From Vitrella brassicaformis CCMP3155 (taxonomy: Eukaryota; Protista; Chromerida), in NCBI GenBank assembly GCA_001179505.1, contig CDMY01000446.1:1-64000 (forward strand): a stretch of 64,000 nucleotides of DNA, written 5' to 3'. Below are positions 2,742-43,275 of this stretch, one piece after another (positions within the stretch are counted from its first letter, which is position 1; every line of letters begins with the position of its first letter). A program made the position numbers and the translations under genes. The notes under the pieces were generated by a model. It worked only from the letters and a program-made list of their open reading frames with translations. It made no database searches and had not been told where the DNA came from.

Positions 2742-5042
2742 CTAGCATGCACCCACGCCACACGTACCACCACTCTCTTGTTCGAAGGCAGAAAGTCTTC
2801 GGTTCTCGACACACCTCAGCAGCGCATCAGTGTTCGCCAACACATCAAGCCGCACCCACTGCAGAACACCCACGAGGTGATGTAGCACCGTCAGGCCGAG
2901 AAACACCTGCCTACAGCTCGCCTCGTCTATCGCTCCCCGCTGGAGAATCGCCCCCAACAACCGCTCAATCACCCCAATGCTTGTGACAAGACACAGGGAC
3001 TCCAGGTGCGCCACAGCCATCAGTGCGATTGAGAGACAGGCGACGTTCCATTCTCTCTGCCCGGCATTTGTCCTGCCGTCCACCGTCAAGTCCACGTGCC
3101 GCACAAGCCTCGTTGTGAGAGGAAGCGTCCAGCGGTACACGTCCAGCTTGGACAACGAGTGCAGAAGAGACGACATATTCTGCGCATCCACATGGACCCA
3201 AAATGCGTGGCAGTGATCCACCAATCTGTCCGCCCTCAGCTCATTCTTGTCCATGTTGTCATAATCGATAACAGCATCATCGTCTGGCTTGACGGCGGCA
3301 GCATCTGCAGCTGGCGCATCGTCATCCTCTGGTGGATGCGGGCATGACACAAGGAAGTTCTGCATTGCTGTGAGGAAGTCGGGCGGAGGCTGGTGCTGGA
3401 ATCTCCCTAGGGCGTTCAGCGTGAGCGATAAGTCGATGGCGTTGGCCTTCCACACGCTGCTGGCCATCTTGGCGACTAGCTGGTCGGTCAGCTGCCGGTG
3501 GAAGTACCCCAGCTTGGCGAGTGCGCTCAGCAGTATGCTGATGTCGCATGCACGGAGGCTGTCGATAAGCGGCCGGTTGCTCCTCTCGTGCCGCCTCTCC
3601 CCATGGCCCTTGAGCATCACCCTCACGGCCTCCTTAACGGCCGCCTTGACGTCAGGGATGCTCGCTGTGTCATCTTGTGTCGGGTGTTCGTCCTCGGCTT
3701 CGTGAGCTTCGATAGCAGAGTCGGGCAGAAGCAGCCCCAGTGAGTGTACGAAGGCCACAATCTCAAATGGCTTCATCTCTCGCATGACGGCAGGCAGCCG
3801 CCGGCACAGGACAATCATCAGCTCCTCGTCCCTCTCCTGCACCCTGGCATAAGCGTTGGCAACGTTCGCCAGGTCCAGCTGGTTCAGCTCGTGAGATCGA
3901 CGCTTCAGTTCGTCAGCCAGGAGGGAGTAAAGAGGCCGCCAGAAGACCCCAAAGCGCGACAGACCATTCAGAATGTTGGCCATGTTCTGTGGCGTGAAGT
4001 CGTGATAGCGCCCCCGCCGCACGAGTTGCTGGCTGAGCATGAGGAAGAGCTGCCGCACCTCTTGCGTGTCCTCAACGCGGCCATGAAAGCGGGCGTAGGC
4101 GTTGATGACATTCGAGTAGCCCTGTGGGTCGAATTCGCCCGCAATCCGATAAATGCGCCGAGTGGCCGCGTGCAGTAAGTGAGGCGGGAAGATATAGAGC
4201 TTGGCGAAGGCATTGAGGATGGTTGACAGCGAGTGGGGGCTGATGGTGTCGATCGATGCTTTGCTGCGGTCATCCGTGAGGATCTCCTGCATGCGATAGA
4301 AGAGGGGCTTCTTGCGGATGTTGAAGCGGGCAAACGCGTTCGCCACCATCGCCACGCCCTGGTGAGTCAAATAAGGCAGCCGGTCCAGCAGGATGGGGCT
4401 CATGAGCTCGAACAGAGCGGGCTCGTTGACATTGAGCTTGGCATAGGCATTGCATATGTTGGCGAGGGACAGATCATCGAGAGCAAAGCTTTGCACCAGT
4501 GCTGACACACGCCGCTGCAGTGCTCGAATGACATCGGGCGATACCTCTCGCCCCTGCACCTTGCCCATTGCCGAGGCCAACATCGACACGTCCTGTGGAT
4601 TGCCGCTGTCCCAGAGAGACTCCCCCAAGTCGACGGCTGCCCTGAGAGTCTCGTGGCCGCTCTCGCGGTGCCTCAGGTTGGCGAGGGCGTTGACAGTGAG
4701 GGCAATCTGCCGCACCTCCACGTGCCGCAACTCACCCACCAGCTCACGCGACAGGGTCCGGAAGAACGATGCGTCGGACATGTTGGTTCTCGCGAAAGCA
4801 TTGGCCAACAGCCCAATAGGTGCGCCGGAGAACTCGTGCAGCCGAGGCTCCAAGAGCGAGGCAGCGTGCCTCCAGAAGGGCGCATCAACGAGGGCATCGT
4901 CTTGCGCCAGCTTGTTGAGCGTGAAGGCGATGTCGTTGGGAGGCAGCTTGGGCATGACAGTGAGCATTTGTTTGGCGAGGCGGAGGGTCTCATCTCGGCC
5001 TCTGCTGTTGCTGTTGACAATGCGCTGAAGGATGTAGTGCAT
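2742..5042 (-). CDS. Heptatricopeptide-repeat (HPR, 37-aa helical repeat) RNA-binding protein, probably organellar
   Basis: Repeats of type F/LxPQxLANxxNAY/FAR/KL at counted 37-aa spacing (NAYAK->NAFAR, NAFAK->NAYAR, NGLSR->NAYAR). First in-frame ATG is 5042; the supplied ORF starts at a TTG, 5111. Confidence 0.8.
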   Translation of the reverse strand: MHYILQRIVNSNSRGRDETLRLAKQMLTVMPKLPPNDIAFTLNKLAQDDALVDAPFWRHAASLLEPRLHEFSGAPIGLLANAFARTNMSDASFFRTLSRELVGELRHVEVRQIALTVNALANLRHRESGHETLRAAVDLGESLWDSGNPQDVSMLASAMGKVQGREVSPDVIRALQRRVSALVQSFALDDLSLANICNAYAKLNVNEPALFELMSPILLDRLPYLTHQGVAMVANAFARFNIRKKPLFYRMQEILTDDRSKASIDTISPHSLSTILNAFAKLYIFPPHLLHAATRRIYRIAGEFDPQGYSNVINAYARFHGRVEDTQEVRQLFLMLSQQLVRRGRYHDFTPQNMANILNGLSRFGVFWRPLYSLLADELKRRSHELNQLDLANVANAYARVQERDEELMIVLCRRLPAVMREMKPFEIVAFVHSLGLLLPDSAIEAHEAEDEHPTQDDTASIPDVKAAVKEAVRVMLKGHGERRHERSNRPLIDSLRACDISILLSALAKLGYFHRQLTDQLVAKMASSVWKANAIDLSLTLNALGRFQHQPPPDFLTAMQNFLVSCPHPPEDDDAPAADAAAVKPDDDAVIDYDNMDKNELRADRLVDHCHAFWVHVDAQNMSSLLHSLSKLDVYRWTLPLTTRLVRHVDLTVDGRTNAGQREWNVACLSIALMAVAHLESLCLVTSIGVIERLLGAILQRGAIDEASCRQVFLGLTVLHHLVGVLQWVRLDVLANTDALLRCVENRRLSAFEQESGGTCGVGAC

Positions 5043-32250: not shown

Positions 32251-34313
32251 GGAGCAGGGTTTGGAAACCCTGGACCCGCGTCCTGGGTGTGGACCGTTGG
32301 ACACTCCACCACACGCAATCATTGAGAGAGAGGTCTCCATCAGCACACACGTGCATTGGTTGCGAGTGATCCGCCAGGCAGCCAAACACAGTCACACACC
32401 CCGAAGCATCACATCAAAATCGGCCACTGCAGCAGCGAAGAGCACGCAGCCAGCCATGAGGACGAGAAGATCTCCATTCACACAGACAGACATACAGACA
32501 TAGAGGGGGAGGGAGAGACGCACGGACAAACAGCAGAGCCATAGCCTAACTCACGCGACGCGTTCATCAGAGGCATATGGTGACCCCTGCAGATCCAGAG
32601 TGAGTGAGTGAGTGAGTGAGAGAGTGAGCGGTACGCCGACCACCATTCGGCCTGCGCACACACAACGCAATTAGATGACCGAAGACATTCATCGGCTTGG
32701 CGCGTGGCATTTCTGTGGCGTACCAGTGGTAGTTGGACCGCTCAATCAGACAGCGCCACCTGTCGTGTGCACAGGGAGGGACACACTTGTGTGCTGTGTG
32801 CATTCCCTCCCTCTTTGGTACCTGCACTGCCCTCATCGCTGCCATCGTCGGAACCTAGCACGACACATCAACACACAACCACACACAACACAAGCCACGT
32901 CGTGCTGTCCATCCGGCGCCTATTTGTATGTGTCCGTACCACCGTCATCATGATTCTACTTGGCCGTCGAAGACGTATGGCGCCGCTCGCTCCAGCGCCA
33001 CACGGGCCAGCTGAGTGGTGACGGGGAAGCGGTCCTTGAAGGCACGCCCCTCACCACCGACAGGCGCCTCGATCGTCCAGACCTGGACCCTCGCTGCAGA
33101 CAGACAATGACAGAAAGAAAACACTGATGACACTTGACACCAGCAGAGCTGCCTGTCTGTCGGCCTGACCGGTGCCGTCGACCATATCCCTAATCTTAAT
33201 CCACGCGACGAAGTTCTGGCTGCTGTCGGTGAGCACCAGATCTCGCGTAGGGCCTTCCCAGGTGAGTGTGGTGGTGCATCCGGCCACTGGTGTGTGGGGC
33301 GAGTCCGTCAGCAGGCCATCCAGACGGCCGCCACCAACACGCCTGAACCAACCACACACACACACACACACACACAATCACACACGCACCCCTCTCGCCA
33401 CTGGTTCCATTGGTGTGTTACCTATTGAGATCTATCGATGTGCTATTGATCTGCTGAGTCTCGCTGCTGAAGTGGTCGAGGATCGTATGCTTGGCGAATG
33501 ATGATGCTGACGCGTACTGGAACAGGTTGATCGACACCCATTGGTCGATGTCGGGAAAGTAGGAGATGCCGCTCCGCACTGGCGGGTCATGCTCTAGTCG
33601 GTGCTGCTGATACAGATGGCGGGCGGGGAGGGGCGGGTTGACGTCCAGTCGGAAGCCGGGCTGGACCTCGAGGGCCCGCACCTCACCATTGGCACGGCGG
33701 AAGATCCGCAGGCAGCTGCCGTTGCCATTGGCATGGCGGAAGATCCACAGGTGGCTGCCGTACACACCGAAGCGCACATGGCGGCCGACCACCATGAGCT
33801 GCGCCAACACACGGGAAACCGACAGATACGCCTACACCACACACACACACAGACAGAAAGAGAGAGAGGGGATGATGCCTCTCTGTTCGCTCCCGCCCCT
33901 CTGTGTGTGCCTCACCGTCTTGTTGGCGTGTGTGTTGATGTCATCTGCCGTGAGGATGACGGGCAGCTCACAGTTGCCGCACTGCACCCCCAGCTCAATC
34001 ACCTCGCCCATCTCCACCCAGCTCCCCTCCTCCATCAGCACACAGCCGCCAGCAGGTCACACACGCCGAACTGCTCATCGTCGAACCGCATCAGCTGCAC
34101 TTGCCGCCCGTTGACCACCCGCCGCAGCCCCGCCTGTGAGCCCAGCGAGTGACGGAGCCGATCTCTCAGCTGGGCCGCTCCAAAGAGCTTGCTGAGCCAT
34201 GTGCAGGTGGCTCTCAGCTGGAGTACGTCTGTGAGGCTGAGGAGGTAGAAGGCGCGGCGGCCGACGAAGATGTACGAGAAGGGGTGCTGCTGCTGATGTT
34301 GCTGTTGCTGCAT
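32251..34313 (-). mobile_element. ~2.1-kb dispersed gene-carrying repeat, copy 2
   Basis: Homologous to 21848-23993, same orientation, ~10.4 kb away. Terminal hairpin CAGGGTTT-GG-AAACCCTG at 32255-32272. Confidence 0.5.
32948..34313 (-). pseudogene. Second copy of the MQQQHQQQHP-family gene, with an apparent 1-nt frameshift
   Basis: DLLAAVC is followed by TGA (gctgtgtgctgatggag) near 34035, while copy 1 reads TVCVMEEG in frame. Confidence 0.6.
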
Positions 34314-34335
34314 TTGCAGCAGATGATATCGGAAG

Positions 34336-34343
34336 TGCGAGCT
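34336..34343 (+). promoter_or_regulatory. TGCGAGCT motif between repeat-2 gene and PKD2-like gene
   Basis: Exact match inside an 83-bp head-to-head gap. Confidence 0.55.
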
Positions 34344-34395
34344 GTTGAAGGGGGGCGGTGGGGGTTCCCCAGTCTCAGCAGAAGGCGAATCCCCC

Positions 34396-37300
34396 ATGAT
34401 GGACAGTACAAATGGTGCCGTGACGCTTCCCTCACCCATAACACAGTACAGAGCGGAAAGCGAGGCGCCTCCGCGGCGCAAAAAGAAGAAGGCCGTTATA
34501 GATGACGACGAGAAGCGGCGCGTGAGCAAGGTGGGCAGCTTCGGCAGCCCCACGGCAGGCAAGAGGGCCGAGGAGACGCCCCCGCAGAGGGCGTCCACGG
34601 CGTCTGAGGTGGGGGTGCCGCTGGGCGGCGTGCTCTTCCTGCTCCGCAAGCGGAACAGCGAAAACTTCTGCCTCAAGCTCTTCTTCTACAGCGTGTTCCT
34701 GGGGCTGTTTATTGCCATCACCATGCTGGCAAGGCCTACCAAGTCATCCTATGAGATGCTGGCGGCCGCACGGGGGCTCAGCGCATTGGTCAGCCAGCCA
34801 CAATCACACTTGCACATCCGTATATCTATTTGTCCATGCATGCCGTGCGTTCTTCGCCTGTATGCATGCAGGAGGCAATGCCGAACGCCAATTTTGAGAA
34901 GACCTTTGTAGATGTGGCGCACGACGGCGATTGGTGGGATTGGTGCCTCACGGTGCTGTCGCCGTTTCTGCGTAGTGCGTGGTGGACCAACAAGGAGAAC
35001 CGGACGGGCCTGCTGTACAACGCCGTCTTCATGCCGGTGCGCTTCCGGCAAGTGCGGGTCAAGGAGGACACCTGCAACACACCCGACGGCAACTCAGGTA
35101 CCCACCTGTGTGAGAAGAACACCATGCAGAAATGCATATTGGCAATGTGTGGGCAGAGATGGCCCGTCCGTGCTGGGGCAAGTTCACGTCGAAGCATCTG
35201 GATGACAGTCTTTTCGGCGAGGAGTATAATAACACATTCAAGACAGACATGAACAAAGTGTCGGGCAAAGAGGTACATACACATATGCACACCACCCCTC
35301 GACACGCGCCAGCCGGCATTGGTATTCATTGAGCAGGGGTACGGTCCATCGTACGGCCGTGCTGCACATGTGGTGGACATCATCTTCGGCCCGATGGTAG
35401 AGAACGGCACCGACATTGGGCTGCTGACTCTGACGAGCGACAATACGTCAGTGCTGCCTGACGCTGGTAGTGGCATGCCAGTTGAGAGCGTGGAGGTGCC
35501 CTGGCAGCTGGCACTCATGCTCAACGACACTTGGACAACCTACGCCACACGCGCTGTGAGTGAGAGAGGAAGTGGGAGGGCAGTCAACGAACCCGTATGT
35601 GTGTCTCTGTGGCAGATAAGCGTGGAGGCAGGGATGTATAACCCCAATGTGGACTTGGCCATGTATGTGCGGTGGCACCTGGACATCAGCCCGGGCGGCC
35701 GCGTCGAGCCGAGCATCCTCTTCACGCCTTGCAGATTGCTCCCATACAGGTAGGAAGGCCAGAATGAAGGGAGGGAAAACGGAAACGACATTGCTTCTTG
35801 GCTTTGTTGTCTTCTCTTCTGTCTTGTCCATGGTGGTACGTGCAGTCAGCCGATCGACTGGTTCCGGTTGTGTTTGGAGGTGGCGTTCACGTGCTATATT
35901 GTGGTCTACTGGTGGATAGAGTTCTATGAAATGCGGACGCTCGGGCTCAAAGCCTACTTCTTGTATGTACCCATCCCCCAACACATGAACGCCACACCGA
36001 GGGAGACAACACACGGATGGAGGGATGCATGTGTGTTCGGGCTCGATCAGGTCGTTGTGGAACTGGATTGAGCTGGCCAATCTGTCGATTTACTTGACCA
36101 TCCAGATCTACTGGTTTGCATACCTCTCATTTGACAGGCAGAAATTCACCAAGGTACACACTCGTACTGCTCGGCTAGGTATGTCTCTGTGGCACCTGTT
36201 GGATGTGCGTGTGTCAGGTGTTGGATGAGTTTGGCGAGGAGTTCTTCCGCATAGCCGACCACTACAACTTCACATCCAACCTCGCCGCCTTCAACATCAT
36301 CTGGGCGTTCATCAAAGTCAGTAGATGCACCCGGATGCAGCCATGTCTCCTCTATGCTCTATGTGGTGTGCTGTGCTGTGCTGCGCCGATCAGGTGTTCA
36401 AGTATCTGCAGATGTATCCGTCGATGAACACCCTGTGGGAGGTGCTGTCGCTGTCGATGAAGGATACCCTCCCCTTCGCGGCGGTCTTCCTCCTCTTTGT
36501 CTTCGGCTTCACCTTTGCGGCCCACTGGCTGTACGGATTCACTCTCAGGGAGTTCCACTCGTGGGGACAGTCATTCTCGACACTCATGCAGACACTCAGT
36601 CAGTGATGATGCAGACAGACAGACAAAAGAGCACACGATGGTTGATGGGGTGTGTCTATGTGTGTAGGTGGTGGGCTGCCATATGAAGACATGAAGCGGT
36701 TCGCGCCCGTTGCCACACCGATATTCTTCGCCGCATGGTCAGCCACACACACCCCCACAGAGAGGACACAGGCAAGTAGCAATGGCATTGGTTGTCGTGT
36801 GTGTCAGGATATTGATGATAGCGTTAGTGATGGTCAACATGTTTGTGGCCATCCTCACCGATGCTCACACAGAGACACAAACACGACTGAGGAAACTGGA
36901 GGAAATCGAGGTCAGCCAGCCATTGGGAGCACGCAGGCGACTGAATGCATTGTGTTTCTGTGGGTGTGTGCAGGCGCGGCACACCGGCCGGTCAGCGCTG
37001 ATCAATTTCTTTCAGGGCGTGTGGAGATACATCACATCATTCGTCAAGAAGCGAAGAGAAGCCGCAGGCTACAAGGTAGTCTCCTGCGCACACCACACGC
37101 TCCCTAATCTCTCTCTCTCTCTCTGTGTGTGTGTGTCTCGCGCCTGTCAGAAGGATCGCAGCGGCATGTGGCCGCACGTCCCCGAGCAGAGCAGCAGCAG
37201 CATGCTGGACATGGACCAGAAGTCGCCCAAGCGGGATGTGGAGGCGGGCGTCGTCGAGGGCGAGGGCGGCCCACTGTCTTCCTTCCAGCCGCAGGCGGAG

Positions 37301-38282
37301 GAGGACCACATGCCCGAGACGCTGTGGGACTATGACCCAAAGACGGAGGCGCTCAACGTCCTCATGAAGAAGGTCACTCATGAGAGAGAGCGAGGCTGGA
37401 TTGATTGCACAGGCCATGTGTTTGTGTGTGTATGCAGCTGGATCAGCGGAAGGGCTGGGAGCATGTTCAGCGGGAGGTGTTATCCAACAACACCGTCAAG
37501 AAGGCAGACGGGCTCGCACCGCTATTCGGAGGGGACATCGAGGCTGCCCGTGAGTTTGCCAAGCGTCTGAACCACCTTCTGACTGAAGGACAGGCGCTCA
37601 CATGGGTGAGGAGACAAGCGACAGCGAGAGACACACCATCAGCCAGCCAGGTGTCCGCACCCCGTCTCCTTGTCTTGTATGTAGGAAGAGCAGCGCGAGG
37701 AAGATGAAGTGAAGATGCTGCTTGTGCTGCAGACACAGGTCAGGATACAAATGGACGTATAAATGGGGAGACATGATGCAAAACCTTGTTTGTCTGCAGG
37801 TGAGTCAGCTGCACCATCGCGTCAGGGCAGTCCGCAAGCAGGCCGAGAAGGCCCACAAGGAGCAGAAGCTGGCCTCCGCCCTTGCCCTTCCAGCCAGCAA
37901 GAAGAAGAAGAAGAAGAGCAAGGTGGAGGCCAAAGACAAGGACGCCGGCTCCCCGGTGCAAGATCGCCCGAGCCCTGAGGGCGGCGGGTCCATCGAGGAG
38001 ACACCGCCCCAGCAACAGCCGCAGCCATCTGCAGTCCTGCCCGGCCTGCCGTCACCAGCCCCACCGCACACGGAGCAGGCCCCTCGGCTCGAATACACCA
38101 ACGACTCTTACTTCGAGCGGCAGCCTTCAAAGGGCAGCGGCAGCCCCAGCCGGGCCCTGACTGTGAACCACAGGCGGTCCAAGGCACGCATAGACCCGCT
38201 GTCTGCCTTCAGTGCAGGGGAGGGGGAGGGGGTCAGGACACCGCTGCCGGGGCAGGTGTCGGAAATGGAAGAGGGAGACTGA
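34396..38282 (+). CDS. Polycystin-2-like (TRPP/PKD2) cation channel
   Basis: TM1 LFFYSVFLGLFIAI; extracellular TOP-like VRFRQVRVKEDTC; SLWNWIELAN; IKVFKYLQMYPSM; pore EFHSWGQSFSTL; S6 VMVNMFVAIL. Confidence 0.88.
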
Positions 38283-38573
38283 GGTCAGCAGCCGTTTCCC
38301 TCTTTGTGTGTGTGTGGTTGGTGTAAAGGGCGACGGACATTTTATGCATGCGTATTTGCGTGGATGCCAGCTAGATTCGGGTCCCTCATAAGTGCGTTTA
38401 GATCCATCCATGGTTGCGTGCTTCCATATGTCGCTGTTCGATAGACTCGGTGTCGCTTTCTTACATGCTCACACTTTTTAATTACACATGGAAGGCAATG
38501 CAGTCGTCCTCACACACGTACATGCAGCCATCGATGTCCAACCTTCACCCACACGTGAGACACGAGCAATACA

Positions 38574-39728
38574 TCAGCTCCATGATTTCTTGCCGCGTGC
38601 CCGCAATCGCTGAACAGTGGCTTGCGCGTGCTTGTCCCTGATCCCATGTACATGCATTCGACAGGGCGTCCGGATTCAGTCAACGCATCGATTAATGCAG
38701 AGAGTGTACCTCGGCAGCCATCTGAGGTTGTTCAGGGAATTGTTGCATGGATTGCCATCGATGTGGTCCACGTCCAGATAGCTCTCATCGTATCCTTCCG
38801 ACAGCCACCGGGCCTTCTCCTCATGCAGAAACACCTCAGCGCACAAGCGGTGCACCAAGTACTCGCGACCTGCAAGTCCTACGCTCCGATACCCCGACGC
38901 CACCAAGTAACCCTCGGTCGTCCGTCCGTTGCTATGGCGCACTCTGCCTTGATTCGACACCATAGGGAGCCGCTTGCCGACGTAGCTGTCCGCAAGAAAT
39001 CGGACGGAGCGGAAACGCTCACCAGGCCAGTTCAACTGGGGCAGAAAGTAGAAAGCCCAGCCACATGTTGGCCTCTGTCGCCTCCTCGCGACCTCATTCA
39101 CGTGAACTGGTGGAAGATGCAGCTCTTCTGATGCGTGACGGATGGACCGGAAGACTCGTGTCTCCCCGGTGCGAAGGCAGCGGGCTTTGAGGGGCATGGC
39201 GCTGGCGATAAGGGGCCTCGGGCGGGGCAGAGTGGAGGCCGTCTTGATGGCGTGGTGCTTCGGCGTCACCCACTGCAGGTTCGAGACAGTATTGTTGTCT
39301 CGCACGCCATCTTTGTGGTCCACTTGCAGCTTCCCCGCCATATCCTCGCCGTGCTCAGCGATGAGAATGGCCTTCGCGTGCGTCAGGAAGGTCTCAGCCA
39401 CCAGCCGATGGACGCGATATGGCTTGTAATTCAGCGTGATGATGCGATAGCCGCTACGGTTTAGGCCGCCAGCTGAAACAGTGCCGTTCGGCCGCCAGAT
39501 TTGTCCAGTGGTGGACGCCTGGGCCCCTTGTTTGCAGTGACCATCGAATGGAGGGATGGGCCGGTAGCTCTCACCATTGCCTGGAAGTGGCGGCACGGAA
39601 TGAGTCGTGCCAAACAAGCGGACGGTGCGTGTGGGCGTGTGGGGGGTGGGGACCGGGATCCACTGCAAGCTGGTCACGCAGCAGTTCGAAGCCACGAGTA
39701 GTGCACTTGGACGGCAGACGCGAAGCAT
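38574..39728 (-). CDS. Tandem NUMOD4-HNH / NUMOD1-like HTH / NUMOD4-HNH homing-endonuclease-like protein, one 72-bp intron (38638-38709)
   Basis: VHRLVAETF..VDHKDGVRDNNTVSNLQW and VHRLCAEVF..VDHIDGNPCNNSLNNLRW; NUMOD4-like VSNQGRV; HTH-like TGETRVFRSIRHASEEL. Splicing gives WLPRDKHAQAT..SWS*, parallel to WVTPKHHAIKT of domain 1. Confidence 0.88.
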
Positions 39729-40587
39729 TTTGGGGTTCGGAGAGCCGCAGTCGATCCCTTTTTCCTCGTCAATTTCTTCCTTCCCTCCCGATTAGCCCAA
39801 ATCTGGGCCAATTTTCGTCATCAGGGATGCGCGAGGGACGGTTTGCCACTCGTCTCGTTCATGCCGCAACTTTCTTGTGTCTTGTGTCGTGTAGCTCTTG
39901 AGAAGGCAAATACACAACCCCTCCCACACACAACCAACGCGGCAGCCAAGCCCGAAAGTCAATTATAATGCACATACATACAACCATTCCATCATGTCCA
40001 ACCACAGCACGCGCGAGGCATGCCTCATGGTCGTGCTACCAACACGTGGCCCCTCTCAACCCCTCCCCCGTCCTATGCACGGTATCAATGTGTATATCTA
40101 TATATAGTAGTGTGGACTGTGCTGTCTAAGTACGTACAGTCGTAAATGCATCCACGAGATGTGTGTGTGAGTGTCCTGTGTGTGATTCAGGTCTGGTCGA
40201 GGCGTGTGTGTGTAAGTAAGTGAGGAGAGAGATACATGCACGGCGGGACATTAACTGTCTGGGCAGAAACGAGGGACATGGACAAAAACTGCCAAGCGAA
40301 ACAGTACAGTGTCGTCGCTACACGTACAAATGAGTACACATGCAGAGAGACAGCACAGCACCAGCCAAACCGAAGCAAAAATCCGGGGAGTGCGACAGCC
40401 GCCCGACCTTACCACCAGCAGCACATCATCATTTCCACGCATGTACGGTACGCGCTGTGCTGTGCGTGGCTACCCCTCCCATACAGCCAGTGTATGGATG
40501 TAGGCCTGGCGTGCTCTGCTTGAGCACATGTATGTAGGCATAAATGAAGACATACATACATCACACGCACATCGTCCGTCTGTTAAG

Positions 40588-42994
40588 CTAAGCTGCACTA
40601 ACACTTGTCCCGTGCGTGTCGCCCCTGAGCAGCTCCCACTTGCCCGCCAAGGAAGAATGAATCAGCACCGCTATGTGGACGACCATCGACATGGCAGTGC
40701 TGACGAGCTGCATCACCAAATAGAGAGGGCTAAACAGCTCTCGCGCCTCGGCTGGCGCGACGTGTGCGCTCTCCGGCAGCACCCAGTAGAGTGTCGACGG
40801 GGTCTCCCCTGTCGTCCTGATGCTCGAGAACAGGATGATGGACGCCATCAGGATGGGCGCCTCCCCACACAGACCCAACACGGCATACATGATCCGAACA
40901 GCCGGGCCATTGTCAGGGTATGCCAGCTTCACAAACCAGCAGGCGGCGTCCAGCCCGCACAGCACCATGATGCCCCAGCCAACGGGAGAGCTCCACTTAG
41001 TCAGCTGCAGCACCAAGAGTGCGGTGGTGGCGTCTGCCACAAGGTCCACGGCCGTGAGGAAGCAGCGGACGACATAGGCCATCCATCTGCGCATGGGGCG
41101 GGCGGGCATGTACCTCCCCAGCACACAACGCATGGCGCGGAGCAGCAAGCGTTGCCATCGCGGGGTCGTCCTCTGCTGCTCGCCGGCTTGCTTATTATTC
41201 TCCTCGGTCCTGAACCGCTCATACGCCCGATCTCCGATAAGAATGCAAAAGACCTGCAGGCACCCACACACATCGACGTGCACGACCGTCCCCATACTGC
41301 TTGTCTGTCTCTGTGTGTGGTTCTCCCTCTCCCTGTTGGCTCCACTGACCAGTGTGTTGACGAACATGGCCCACCAAACAACGACCAGCGAATTCCTGCC
41401 CCACATCTGGGCGTCGGGCGTGTCGCTCACAGAAGTCCGTATGAGATCGTAAAAACGGTAGGCCGACATGAGCTGGTTCGGCCACCACAGGCACCACTTG
41501 ACGCGACGCAGCGCCGCTGGCCGAGCGAACAGCGTGACGAAGAGAAAGAGGCTCATGTTGGCAAGCAGCAGCACCAGGATGATAATGTGTGGCCATGTGA
41601 CGTATTTCTGCATCTGACCTGCATTCAGGCAAAACACACACAGACACGTCATCTGCTCCCTCAGGCACACACGCAAAGCATCTGACCGTCATGAAACTTG
41701 TCGTCGTAGCGGCGGACGAGCAGCGTCGTGAGGGTGCCGGCCCATAGGAAGGCAGAGAACCCCACAAAGCCTGGTGGGCCGACATGATGCCTCAAATTGT
41801 CCCACGAAAACTGCTGGTAGACGTCGTAGATGCCGCCGGGTGTCTTGTGCTGCCCAATCGAGGGACCCTGCAGCTGCTTGGCCTGGTCAATGACGGATAT
41901 CACGTGCACGAACGAGTGAGCATGAGCATCAGGTTGCTGATCAAAATTGGCCGAGCAGTTGCCTGTCGCATCTTCTGCTGGGGAGGGGGGGCAGGGCGTG
42001 TTGTGTGGGGTCGGTGCGGGAGGTGGCTTGGGAATGGACGAGTGGCGGCGACTGGCCGAGTAGAGCACAAACAAGAGGCAAGCTGTGAGAACCTCAGACA
42101 GGCCTGCAGACACAGAAGAGAAGACACCGTTGTCCCTCCTTCCCTCCTCGTGGCTCCCTAAAGTGGTTGACTGACCAATCAGCGCCACATCCCAATCGAT
42201 GAAGGCCATGATGTAGGGATCCCTGTACAGCTTTTTCACATCCCGTGGCCTCCCAAACAACGAGATGATGCCGCCATTGACCCCACCGACCGCGGCAAGT
42301 ACACCAAACACCGCCATGAGCAATCGAAGCAGCCTTTGCATAGAGGAGTCGTCAACTCGCAAGTTGCGAGGCGCGGGCGCTTCCCGCGAGGGAGGGTCGT
42401 GTGGCGTGGAGGGGGATCGTGTGCTGGGGGTGGACGGCAGCACTTGCTGCTGCTGCTGTCGTGGTGTGCACCGGTGGAGCAGCGAGGAGAGCTTCGTCAC
42501 CGTATAGCCAAGAGCGCACAGCTGGCGGCGGACCTGCATAGACAAACAAGGGGACACAGACGTGTGTCTGCTGGATACACATCCTCATGTCGACACAGAC
42601 GTGTGTCTGCTGGATACACATCCTCATGCCGCGTCTACCAGAAGGGCTAGAGTAAGGCCGACACATAGCCCACCGGCCATCGCGAACACCCTGAGCAGCA
42701 AGCCAGACACCAAGTGCGGAGAAACGATGGCTGACTGCATATATGTGTTGTGTGGATTGCTCACTTGACGAAGATCAATTCTTTGAAGCCAGGCACTTGC
42801 AGCAGGGTGGGTGCGTATCTCTCGGGGAATGGCCGGACCACCGTTGCTGTGTTGAGGCAGAGAGAAAGAAGCAGCATCGCCACGCAGATCCATGAGCATC
42901 GTTCGGCGAGGATCACTGCGTCGTCAAGCGCCGCCTGCCGCGTTTCGGGAGGAGGCCTCTCGTCGAGATCCTTTGCTGCCGGCGTGTCCGGCAT
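40588..42994 (-). CDS. Multi-pass membrane protein of unknown family
   Basis: Many hydrophobic stretches in the ORFs at 42761-43018, 41661-42557 and 40588-41676. No recognised family motif; exon joins uncertain. Confidence 0.55.
42553..42628. repeat. 37-bp direct repeat x2 (period 39), probably intronic
   Basis: gacacagacgtgtgtctgctggatacacatcctcatg at 42553 and 42592. Confidence 0.9.
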
Positions 42995-43076
42995 GGTTGA
43001 AAGATCTGGGTAGAGCACAGCTGCCCCAGCTGCCCCATGGCCTCTGTCCTTCCCTCTGCGTTCTCTCCCGGTCCAC

Positions 43077-43084
43077 AGCTCGCA
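43077..43084 (-). promoter_or_regulatory. TGCGAGCT motif ~85 bp upstream of the membrane-protein ATG
   Basis: AGCTCGCA on +; a one-mismatch variant TGCTCGCA lies at 43188-43195. Confidence 0.45.
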
Positions 43085-43203
43085 TTTGCTAGCGTCGTTC
43101 GTTCGTTGACGATTAGCGAAGAGGAGCCCTTCGCGGGCGATCTGCTGCAGAATGAAGACGTGGGAAGAACTGGCGCTACCCTGGAATTGCTCGCATCATA
43201 AGA

Positions 43204-43275
43204 GGAAGGCGGCGGGATCGAACCCGCATTGAATCGTTCATCCAGAGAGCGGTTGATTGATTGTGCTACACCTCC
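43204..43275 (-). pseudogene. 72-nt tRNA-like relic (tRNA pseudogene or SINE head); anticodon not assignable
   Basis: Acceptor stem GGAGGTG/CGCCTTC (7 bp, 2 G-U), TAGCACAA at positions 8-15, T-arm GCGGG-TTCGAT-CCCGC starting at position 49. D and anticodon arms do not fold canonically. Confidence 0.45.

Follow-up and report, generated by a model that had tools for sequence, protein, structure and literature searches.

A single-copy, host-adapted nuclear gene of the chromerid Vitrella brassicaformis encodes a 360-residue protein that is predicted to be a tandem I-HmuI-like endonuclease, comprising a leader, a NUMOD4-HNH_3 module, a helix-turn-helix (HTH), a second NUMOD4-HNH_3 module and a terminal basic helix. 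An RNA-derived contig shows that the gene is transcribed and that splicing takes out its 72-nt spliceosomal intron precisely at the predicted borders. The protein falls in a chromerid clade whose nearest relatives, as judged from sequence comparison, are tandem HNH proteins on giant-virus contigs. We hold the descriptive core, namely a spliced host gene for a tandem HNH endonuclease within a chromerid clade, with high confidence. The complete reading, in which a giant-virus-derived host gene would supply an enzyme that is imported into the mitochondrion, is assigned a probability of about 0.4.

The gene lies on the minus strand of the window, the whole 64,000-nt stretch of DNA that was analyzed (strain CCMP3155, contig CDMY01000446.1, positions 1 to 64,000). 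The unspliced minus-strand open reading frame (ORF) at 38676-39728 encodes 350 residues. The ATG at 39728-39726 is its sole possible start; an in-frame stop precedes it by 23 codons, and no further Met occurs before residue 129, which sits within the first nuclease core. A GT at 38709/38708 and an AG at 38639/38638 enclose a 72-nt segment that contains the stop codon of this ORF. Removal of the segment yields ...RWLP-R-DKHAQ..., which reads on to the TGA at 38576-38574 (Table 1), whereas a retained intron would stop the predicted protein after 350 residues, and the second HNH site would lack its last His and its helix. An intron of 72 nt is typical of the region, since the neighboring introns measure 61-79 nt. 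The spliced product exactly matches an annotated protein of 360 residues (termed P0001; V. brassicaformis CCMP3155, contig CDMY01000446.1), with an identity of 100%. Homology searches were queried with exon 1 at first, and from then on with P0001 itself, as taken from the database. The gene model is thus already public, as an unnamed HNH-domain protein. Literature searches for HNH together with Chromera and Vitrella, and for tandem HNH_3 proteins, found no paper, and a search by the Chromera gene identifiers found no paper naming them; the supplements to PMC6668581, which deals with chromerid compartments, do not list these identifiers either. The chromerid genome paper mentions the HNH family nowhere.

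Table 1. Features of the double HNH endonuclease gene, in window coordinates.
Feature	Positions	Strand	Remarks
Whole coding region, two exons and one intron, 360-aa double HNH endonuclease	38574..39728	-	Equals the public Vitrella protein P0001
Exon 1, 1019 nt, codons 1-339 and two bases of codon 340	38710..39728	-	Exact in RNA contig L002 at 3062-4080
Spliceosomal intron, 72 nt, GT..AG, phase 2	38638..38709	-	In-frame TGA at 38678-38676
Exon 2, 64 nt, stop TGA at 38576-38574	38574..38637	-	Codes for D341-S360
H343 and most of the terminal helix 340-359 with the basic tail, included in exon 2	38630-38628 (H343)	-	
N-terminal leader, residues 1-52, candidate organelle-targeting peptide	39573..39728	-	From composition and pLDDT
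Module 1, NUMOD4-like β region and HNH_3 core, residues 53-166	39231..39572	-	
Module 1 catalytic codons, D137-H138 and H159	39320-39315 and 39254-39252	-	
I-HmuI NUMOD-like helix-turn-helix, residues 177-229	39042..39200	-	Below the Pfam threshold
Module 2, exon 1 part, residues 236-339, NUMOD4-like region and HNH_3 core	38710..39023	-	
Module 2 catalytic codons, D321-H322	38768-38763	-	

Splicing was observed in the Logan contig L002 (run ERR558152), which is colinear with positions 43204..34269 of the window minus more than 20 introns. Because more than 20 genomic segments are missing from it, L002 derives from spliced RNA; those missing segments that were checked are GT..AG introns, which were independently seen in the RNA run X6. 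In L002, exon 1 and exon 2 are both exact and directly adjacent, the unspliced donor context is absent, and the ORF of the contig is P0001. The 41-nt junction string was compared with this natural RNA contig only. The initial annotation had proposed that a GT-AG intron restores the terminal helix of the second domain, which the exact junction and the identity of the product with P0001 confirm; its concern that the gene might be neither expressed nor spliced is answered by the spliced junction that L002 carries. The contig runs over three genes, including the upstream gene, and read-through transcription is therefore possible. Covering three genes, L002 defines no single transcript. Poly(A) and strand-specific RNA-seq data were deposited beside the DNA reads and served as evidence for introns (PMC4501334); the runs X1, X2 and X5 are DNA, not RNA. 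In the RNA run X6, the neighbors are covered at a depth of ~5 and a neighboring gene is spliced, yet the depth on 38524-39811 is zero. As X6 covers the neighbors but not the HNH gene, expression of the latter is probably low or conditional. The zero depth itself is neither support for expression nor proof of silence.

The genes around the locus are host genes, encoding a kelch protein, the ribosomal protein S6e and a polycystin/ion-transport channel with many introns, in addition to proteins of 624 and 338 residues, both without a Pfam match. On both flanks the host genes carry spliceosomal introns. The GC content is uniform across the window; the gene has a GC3 of 0.70, compared to 0.74 and 0.78 in its neighbors, and its RSCU correlates with that of the neighbors at r = 0.79, the value between the neighbors themselves being 0.81. 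One DNA unitig spans 37149-42000 at the depth of its flanks in the assemblies of two studies, which rules out a collapsed repeat and led us to reject a multi-copy repeat. No second copy of the gene is found within the window. An integrated viral island or a contaminant was rejected on the grounds of the host neighbors and the host-like codon usage; the chromosomal context, the introns and the codon usage are all those of the host, and the locus is not classified as part of a viral genome. The gene stands between host genes, outside any intron or intein, in agreement with its original description as free-standing. By context it does not classify as a mobile homing endonuclease gene either, being free-standing and single-copy with an old shared spliceosomal intron. 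The initial term "domesticated" holds in the sense of host-adapted, as indicated by the single copy, the host codons and the old shared intron; with regard to the many decaying copies that had been envisaged as a counter-finding, the locus itself is single-copy and intact.

Domain searches revealed HNH_3 twice in Pfam (E = 2.6e-16), along with the PHROGs HNH endonuclease families 59 (E = 5e-39) and 959 (E = 1e-33). NUMOD4 has a Pfam E-value of 0.083 in P0001, which is below threshold, compared to 4.8e-6 in the paralogue P0004. The I-HmuI NUMOD-like HTH of Pfam scores 16.8 bits against a cut-off of 27 and occurs in one copy, after module 1; in addition, PHROG 3855 ("HTH DNA binding protein") matches residues 177-229 (E = 4.6e-4). 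Residues 256-344 could be aligned to residues 14-97 of I-HmuI (PDB 1u3e, E = 2e-6), and I-HmuI is the best match among solved structures in the fold comparison (1u3e, E = 1.6e-10). The AlphaFold2 model, which was built from a 50-sequence alignment with a mean pLDDT of 86 and a pTM of 0.58, possesses two helices (residues 196-203 and 207-216) in the HTH region and strands ahead of each HNH core. The I-HmuI alignment, PHROG 3855 and the AlphaFold2 model back the sub-threshold NUMOD4 call and, more tentatively, that of the HTH. No HTH was found after module 2. The layout NUMOD4-HNH-HTH-NUMOD4-HNH that had first been read from the sequence was thus recovered by the two Pfam HNH_3 hits, the PHROGs, the I-HmuI alignment and the model. 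The placement of the two heads relative to each other in the model is uncertain (pTM 0.58). The protein has both the β-β-α-metal core and the NUMOD4 region of the I-HmuI-like HNH_3 group (His-Me finger group 2). In a 2017 survey, this group comprised 28 eukaryotic sequences, compared to 795 viral and 3288 bacterial ones (PMC5714182).

Further analysis of the two HNH cores revealed that both catalytic sets are intact, consisting of D137-H138/N150/H159 and D321-H322/N334/H343, respectively, and that these residues are conserved at both sites throughout the chromerid clade. Of the two DH..N..N sets in the initial annotation, the intactness stood, but the last ligand is His (H159 and H343), not Asn. 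All chromerid members whose sequence extends to the position have His as this last metal ligand, whereas 28 of the 38 other relatives have Asn. The last-ligand Asn of I-HmuI aligns with H343, which is encoded by exon 2, and the predicted helix 340-359 is also nearly all encoded by exon 2. The second active site therefore needs splicing.

I-HmuI of Bacillus phage SPO1, whose reading frame sits in a group I intron within a phage gene, acts as a monomer with one HNH head and nicks a single strand; its structure was described by Shen et al. in 2004, as cited in PMC5714182. The two proteins share an N-terminal β region followed by a β-β-α-metal core with Asp-His ... Asn, and the NUMOD-like HTH of I-HmuI has a probable counterpart after module 1 of the Vitrella protein. 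By contrast, the Vitrella protein has two heads, His instead of Asn as the last ligand, a leader, and no HTH after the second head. Moreover, its gene stands free in a eukaryotic nuclear genome and has a spliceosomal intron.

A word-index protein search retrieved four annotated Vitrella proteins (P0001 and three paralogues with 46-49% identity to it) and six Chromera proteins, together with two unnamed Vitrella-type sequences, one from a JGI transcript-like contig and the other from an ENA metagenome contig. Besides these chromerid-type members, it returned ~190 more distant proteins. Module 1 alone (residues 50-235 of P0001) gave no match at E 1e-5 in a word-index protein search, a result that is uninformative on fragments or fusions. 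The paralogues (Vitrella CEM35287.1, CEM24381.1 and CEM15617.1; Chromera Cvel_17613, 34553, 10696, 23441, 21252 and 1474) are alike in architecture, catalytic residues, basic tail and type of leader, with an identity of 32-48% in the family alignment; they differ in that they occupy separate loci with other neighbors, and in the length and charge of the leader. Each species has four to six intact family genes, and every full-length member carries the basic C-terminal tail.

The Vitrella paralogues are 44-49% identical to P0001, a divergence at which synonymous sites are saturated. The intron of P0001, in phase 2, interrupts the same codon in P0003 (locus L005; phase 2) and in P0004 (phase 1). 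The annotation of P0003 missed this intron (L005 5099-5172), so the annotated protein ends early. P0002 is without the shared intron and has two other introns instead. As the intron is common to paralogues that are less than 50% identical, the duplications took place at the DNA level, long after the gene had become a spliced nuclear gene. The low identity of the paralogues and their old shared intron also argue against a recent burst. These comparisons point to a long-term residence of the family in the nuclear genome.

A quick-search maximum-likelihood tree (LG+G4, unrooted) of 59 proteins of at least 250 residues, taken from the top 60 matches, placed 12 chromerid-type proteins in one clade with an SH-aLRT of 98, composed of the four Vitrella proteins, the six Chromera proteins and the two unnamed Vitrella-type sequences. 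Within the clade, the Vitrella-type and the Chromera proteins form separate subclades, which indicates lineage-specific multiplication. The sister set, which has moderate support (83), includes P0039, whose gene lies on a Tara Oceans scaffold and adjoins a gene for a D5-type primase-helicase, a giant-virus hallmark. P0039 has the derived features of the chromerid proteins: the last ligand is His at either site, module 2 is not followed by an HTH, and the C-terminal tail is basic. Giant-virus MAGs head the IMG/VR matches, Nucleocytoviricota make up most of the nearest Atlas clusters, and the BFVD matches, which extend over 300-370 columns (E 1e-18 to 1e-20), are proteins of EsV-1, PBCV-1 and the marseille-, pitho- and mimivirus groups. 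Most of the closest distant relatives also have two HNH cores, which suggests that the two-headed design was inherited rather than newly made in Vitrella.

With two NUMOD4-HNH_3 modules in one chain, P0001 is built like the giant-virus tandem HNH endonucleases. Its full-length two-module architecture recurs in EsV-1-119 of Ectocarpus siliculosus virus 1, in PBCV-1 Q98474 and in P0039. Nevertheless, the chromerid and the giant-virus proteins are at most ~30% identical, and the former are distinguished by basic leaders, spliceosomal introns and host codon usage; P0039 instead has an acidic N-terminal region of ~140 residues with an extra HTH-like piece, and no intron. A phage as the closest source was rejected, because cultured phages match one module only, at ~28% identity. 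The initial assignment of the modules to a phage, giant-virus or organellar type is correct in that they are I-HmuI-like, but the search and the tree identify the closest kin as tandem HNH proteins of Nucleocytoviricota, not of phages. The proposal that the basic C-terminal tail was added in eukaryotes as an NLS was also rejected, as the viral sister P0039 has a basic tail too. Neither the word-index search nor the tree contained an apicomplexan homologue, and the dinoflagellate-labelled match P0015 lies outside the chromerid clade, among environmental sequences.

The N-terminal leader carries no Asp or Glu in residues 1-52, the first acidic residue being E53, and contains the R37-L-F-G40 stretch; the acid-free N-terminus and its R-x-F site are thus as originally described. 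In total, residues 1-58 comprise 5 Arg/Lys, 12 Ser/Thr and the one acidic residue E53. The pLDDT is below 50 for residues 2-42, which predicts disorder, and AlphaFold2 models the leader without a helix. The helical moment peaks at a moderate 0.87, and only two positive charges are found in the first 30 residues. In the chromerid proteins the first conserved motif is preceded by 34-90 residues, compared to a median of 29 in the other relatives. The motif R-x-F-[STG] occurs in 6 of the 10 non-redundant family leaders against 0.68 expected, and none of 5000 per-leader shuffles reaches 6, a significance that is overstated, as the choice of motif followed inspection of the data and the leaders come from related paralogues. 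The motif is similar to the R-3 type of processing site in mitochondrial presequences. Since the N-terminus of the giant-virus sister P0039 is acidic, the basic leader is a chromerid feature. Within the family, the leader of P0004 holds 9 acidic residues, and those of P0006 and P0007 have acidic residues at positions 10 and 12.

Two properties of mitochondrial presequences are found in this leader: a basic N-terminal extension with many Ser/Thr and few acidic residues, and an MPP-type Arg site, the latter as a pattern only and recognized post hoc. Residues 10-18 are moderately hydrophobic, with a mean Kyte-Doolittle value of 2.06 that is the family's highest, compared to maxima of 0.8-1.6 in the other members. 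The stretch continues to Q22, followed by W23 and then by a hydroxyl- and proline-rich stretch free of acidic residues. Given the hydrophobic residues 10-18 and Trp23 soon after, a bipartite plastid leader is possible. Altogether, the composition, the disorder, the recurring R-x-F-S/T/G and the contrast with the viral N-terminus fit a mitochondrial presequence. Import into an organelle of some kind is, in our estimate, slightly favored over no import, and the mitochondrion specifically is suggested tentatively, at somewhat less than even odds.

Taking these features together, we propose that one ancestral gene was derived from a giant-virus-like source before or near the split between Vitrella and Chromera, and was then duplicated separately in the two lineages. 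Its product would be a sequence-tolerant, site-specific DNA endonuclease, each HNH head of which may nick one strand, by analogy with I-HmuI. In that case, the two intact heads, joined through the HTH, could nick both strands, and a single chain would be able to produce a staggered double-strand break. The basic, hydroxyl-rich and disordered leader would direct the protein into an organelle, the mitochondrial matrix being favored, with processing near R37-L-F-G40. The imported enzyme would then cut organellar DNA, feeding recombination or repair.

A different explanation is a selfish family of free-standing homing endonucleases, which acts on nuclear DNA or persists without benefit to the host. 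Its copies would be born and decay, the N-terminal extension would be no targeting signal, and the basic C-terminal tail might be an NLS. Such a family is suggested by the viral relatives, which are typical selfish endonuclease genes, by the lineage-specific multiplication seen in the separate Vitrella-type and Chromera subclades, by the heterogeneity of the leaders, with that of P0004 being acidic, and by the basic tail of all full-length members. However, the same tail in the giant-virus sister means that it is no eukaryotic addition, and the divergence of the paralogues (44-49% identity) with their old shared intron speaks against a recent burst. The locus is, moreover, single-copy at the k-mer level, the catalytic residues are kept in both domains clade-wide, and a basic leader with the recurring R-x-F-S/T motif stands in place of the acidic viral N-terminus. 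We regard a selfish family of this kind as rather unlikely. Less still speaks for a functionless relic of an integrated giant-virus segment, or for an assembly contaminant: its closest relatives are indeed viral, but the locus has intron-bearing host genes on both sides, uniform GC and host-like codon usage, the gene has its own spliceosomal intron that is removed in RNA, the reading frame is unbroken, the two active sites are intact, and the same DNA contig was recovered in two independent studies. These observations largely refute a relic or contaminant, which we consider highly improbable.

The same enzyme might also be imported into the plastid, or into both plastid and mitochondrion, via a bipartite leader in which residues 1-22 form a weak signal peptide and the transit peptide starts from Trp23, and there act on plastid DNA. 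The hydrophobicity of residues 10-18, the highest of the family at 2.06, and the position of W23 directly after Q22 are in line with such a route; red-derived complex plastid proteins typically expose Phe or another aromatic residue after cleavage of the signal peptide (PMC6668581). Rice offers a plant precedent in WSL9, an HNH-domain protein encoded in the nucleus, on which plastid function and early chloroplast development depend (PMC7354284). WSL9, however, contains just one HNH domain, and what its mutant disturbs is rpl2 splicing and rpoB editing, not DNA cutting (PMC7354284). It resembles the Vitrella protein in role only, as a nuclear HNH gene related to an organelle. In the Vitrella leader, the hydrophobic stretch is short and broken by Ser and Asn; nothing like it is seen in the other family members, whose hydrophobic maxima reach 0.8-1.6 and whose leaders look mTP-like. 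A Gln at position -1 makes a poor signal-peptidase site, which also counts against this route. Plastid or dual import is accordingly judged improbable, and mitochondrial import of a giant-virus-derived host enzyme is the reading that we prefer.

Apart from import, the protein would be an ordinary HNH_3 endonuclease in an unusual host, and the case for host adaptation of its function rests on one step, the predicted import. Scrambled mtDNA is also found in apicomplexans and dinoflagellates. The tie to the fragmented mtDNA of myzozoans that the initial annotation had drawn found no support, as no apicomplexan member turned up in the word-index search or the tree and P0015 falls outside the chromerid clade. 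The mitochondrial genomes of chromerids are described as fragmented and scrambled, for which PMC8554336 gives only "possibly due to extensive recombination" as a cause; no enzyme is currently known to have been named for it. That a captured, leader-bearing and multiplied viral nuclease makes the double-strand breaks which drive the fragmented, scrambled and recombining mtDNA of Chromera and Vitrella, or else their unusual plastid DNA, is speculation, to which we give a small chance.

The gene documents a case in which a giant-virus-type selfish nuclease gene has turned into a long-term, intron-bearing and expressed resident of a eukaryotic nuclear genome, and its family persists in both photosynthetic lineages related to the apicomplexan parasites. 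Should the leader import these enzymes into mitochondria or plastids, they would become candidates for the cause of the fragmented, recombinogenic organelle genomes of chromerids. If they do break organellar DNA in this way, a virus-derived nuclease would have become a host tool for organelle genome architecture.

In the public annotation, P0003 (CEM24381.1, contig CDMY01000581.1), a Vitrella paralogue of the window gene, ends directly after the NLQW motif. The genomic contig carries a GT..AG intron at the same codon and in the same phase as the intron of the window gene, and the exon downstream of it brings back the final His together with the basic helix. The public gene model of P0003 looks truncated. 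The gene of P0009, an environmental relative of the Vitrella type, is split within the second module, immediately ahead of the conserved VHRLVA motif, which indicates a putative intron in this uncultured relative at a position other than that of the window gene.

Coordinates of the features
Feature	Location	Description
P0009 gene	L007:2494-3518	ENA ERZ893784 metagenome contig; environmental, Vitrella-type
P0003 intron	L005:5099-5172 (CDMY01000581.1)	74 nt, GT..AG
HTH-sized piece of the window protein	window 39042-39200	residues 177-229
RNA-derived contig L002	window 34269-43204	three genes, both strands

The double HNH protein P0015 (399 aa) has one HTH following each module. An identical protein is listed under two dinoflagellate names, Prorocentrum cordatum and Polarella glacialis, and it clusters with environmental sequences, apart from the chromerid proteins. 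Its presence in the dinoflagellate assemblies may reflect contamination or an inserted viral sequence.

Structural comparison of the window protein against the PDB gave 8b6e, a short Paulinella protein that binds DNA and is targeted to the chromatophore, as the second-best fold match (probability 0.99 over 51 columns), and the match corresponds to the HTH-sized piece between the two HNH modules. They both have a small DNA-binding fold, and the Paulinella protein illustrates the import of a module of this kind into a different organelle.

In the RNA-like run X6, no contig fell on the HNH gene (window 38524-39811), whereas the flanking genes were covered at a depth of ~5, suggesting that expression of the HNH gene is low or condition-dependent. 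The gene upstream of it encodes 663 aa in L002, compared to 624 aa in the public annotation. L002 itself is a single unbroken contig that runs across genes on both strands, and this continuity indicates overlapping UTRs or read-through in the compact Vitrella genome.
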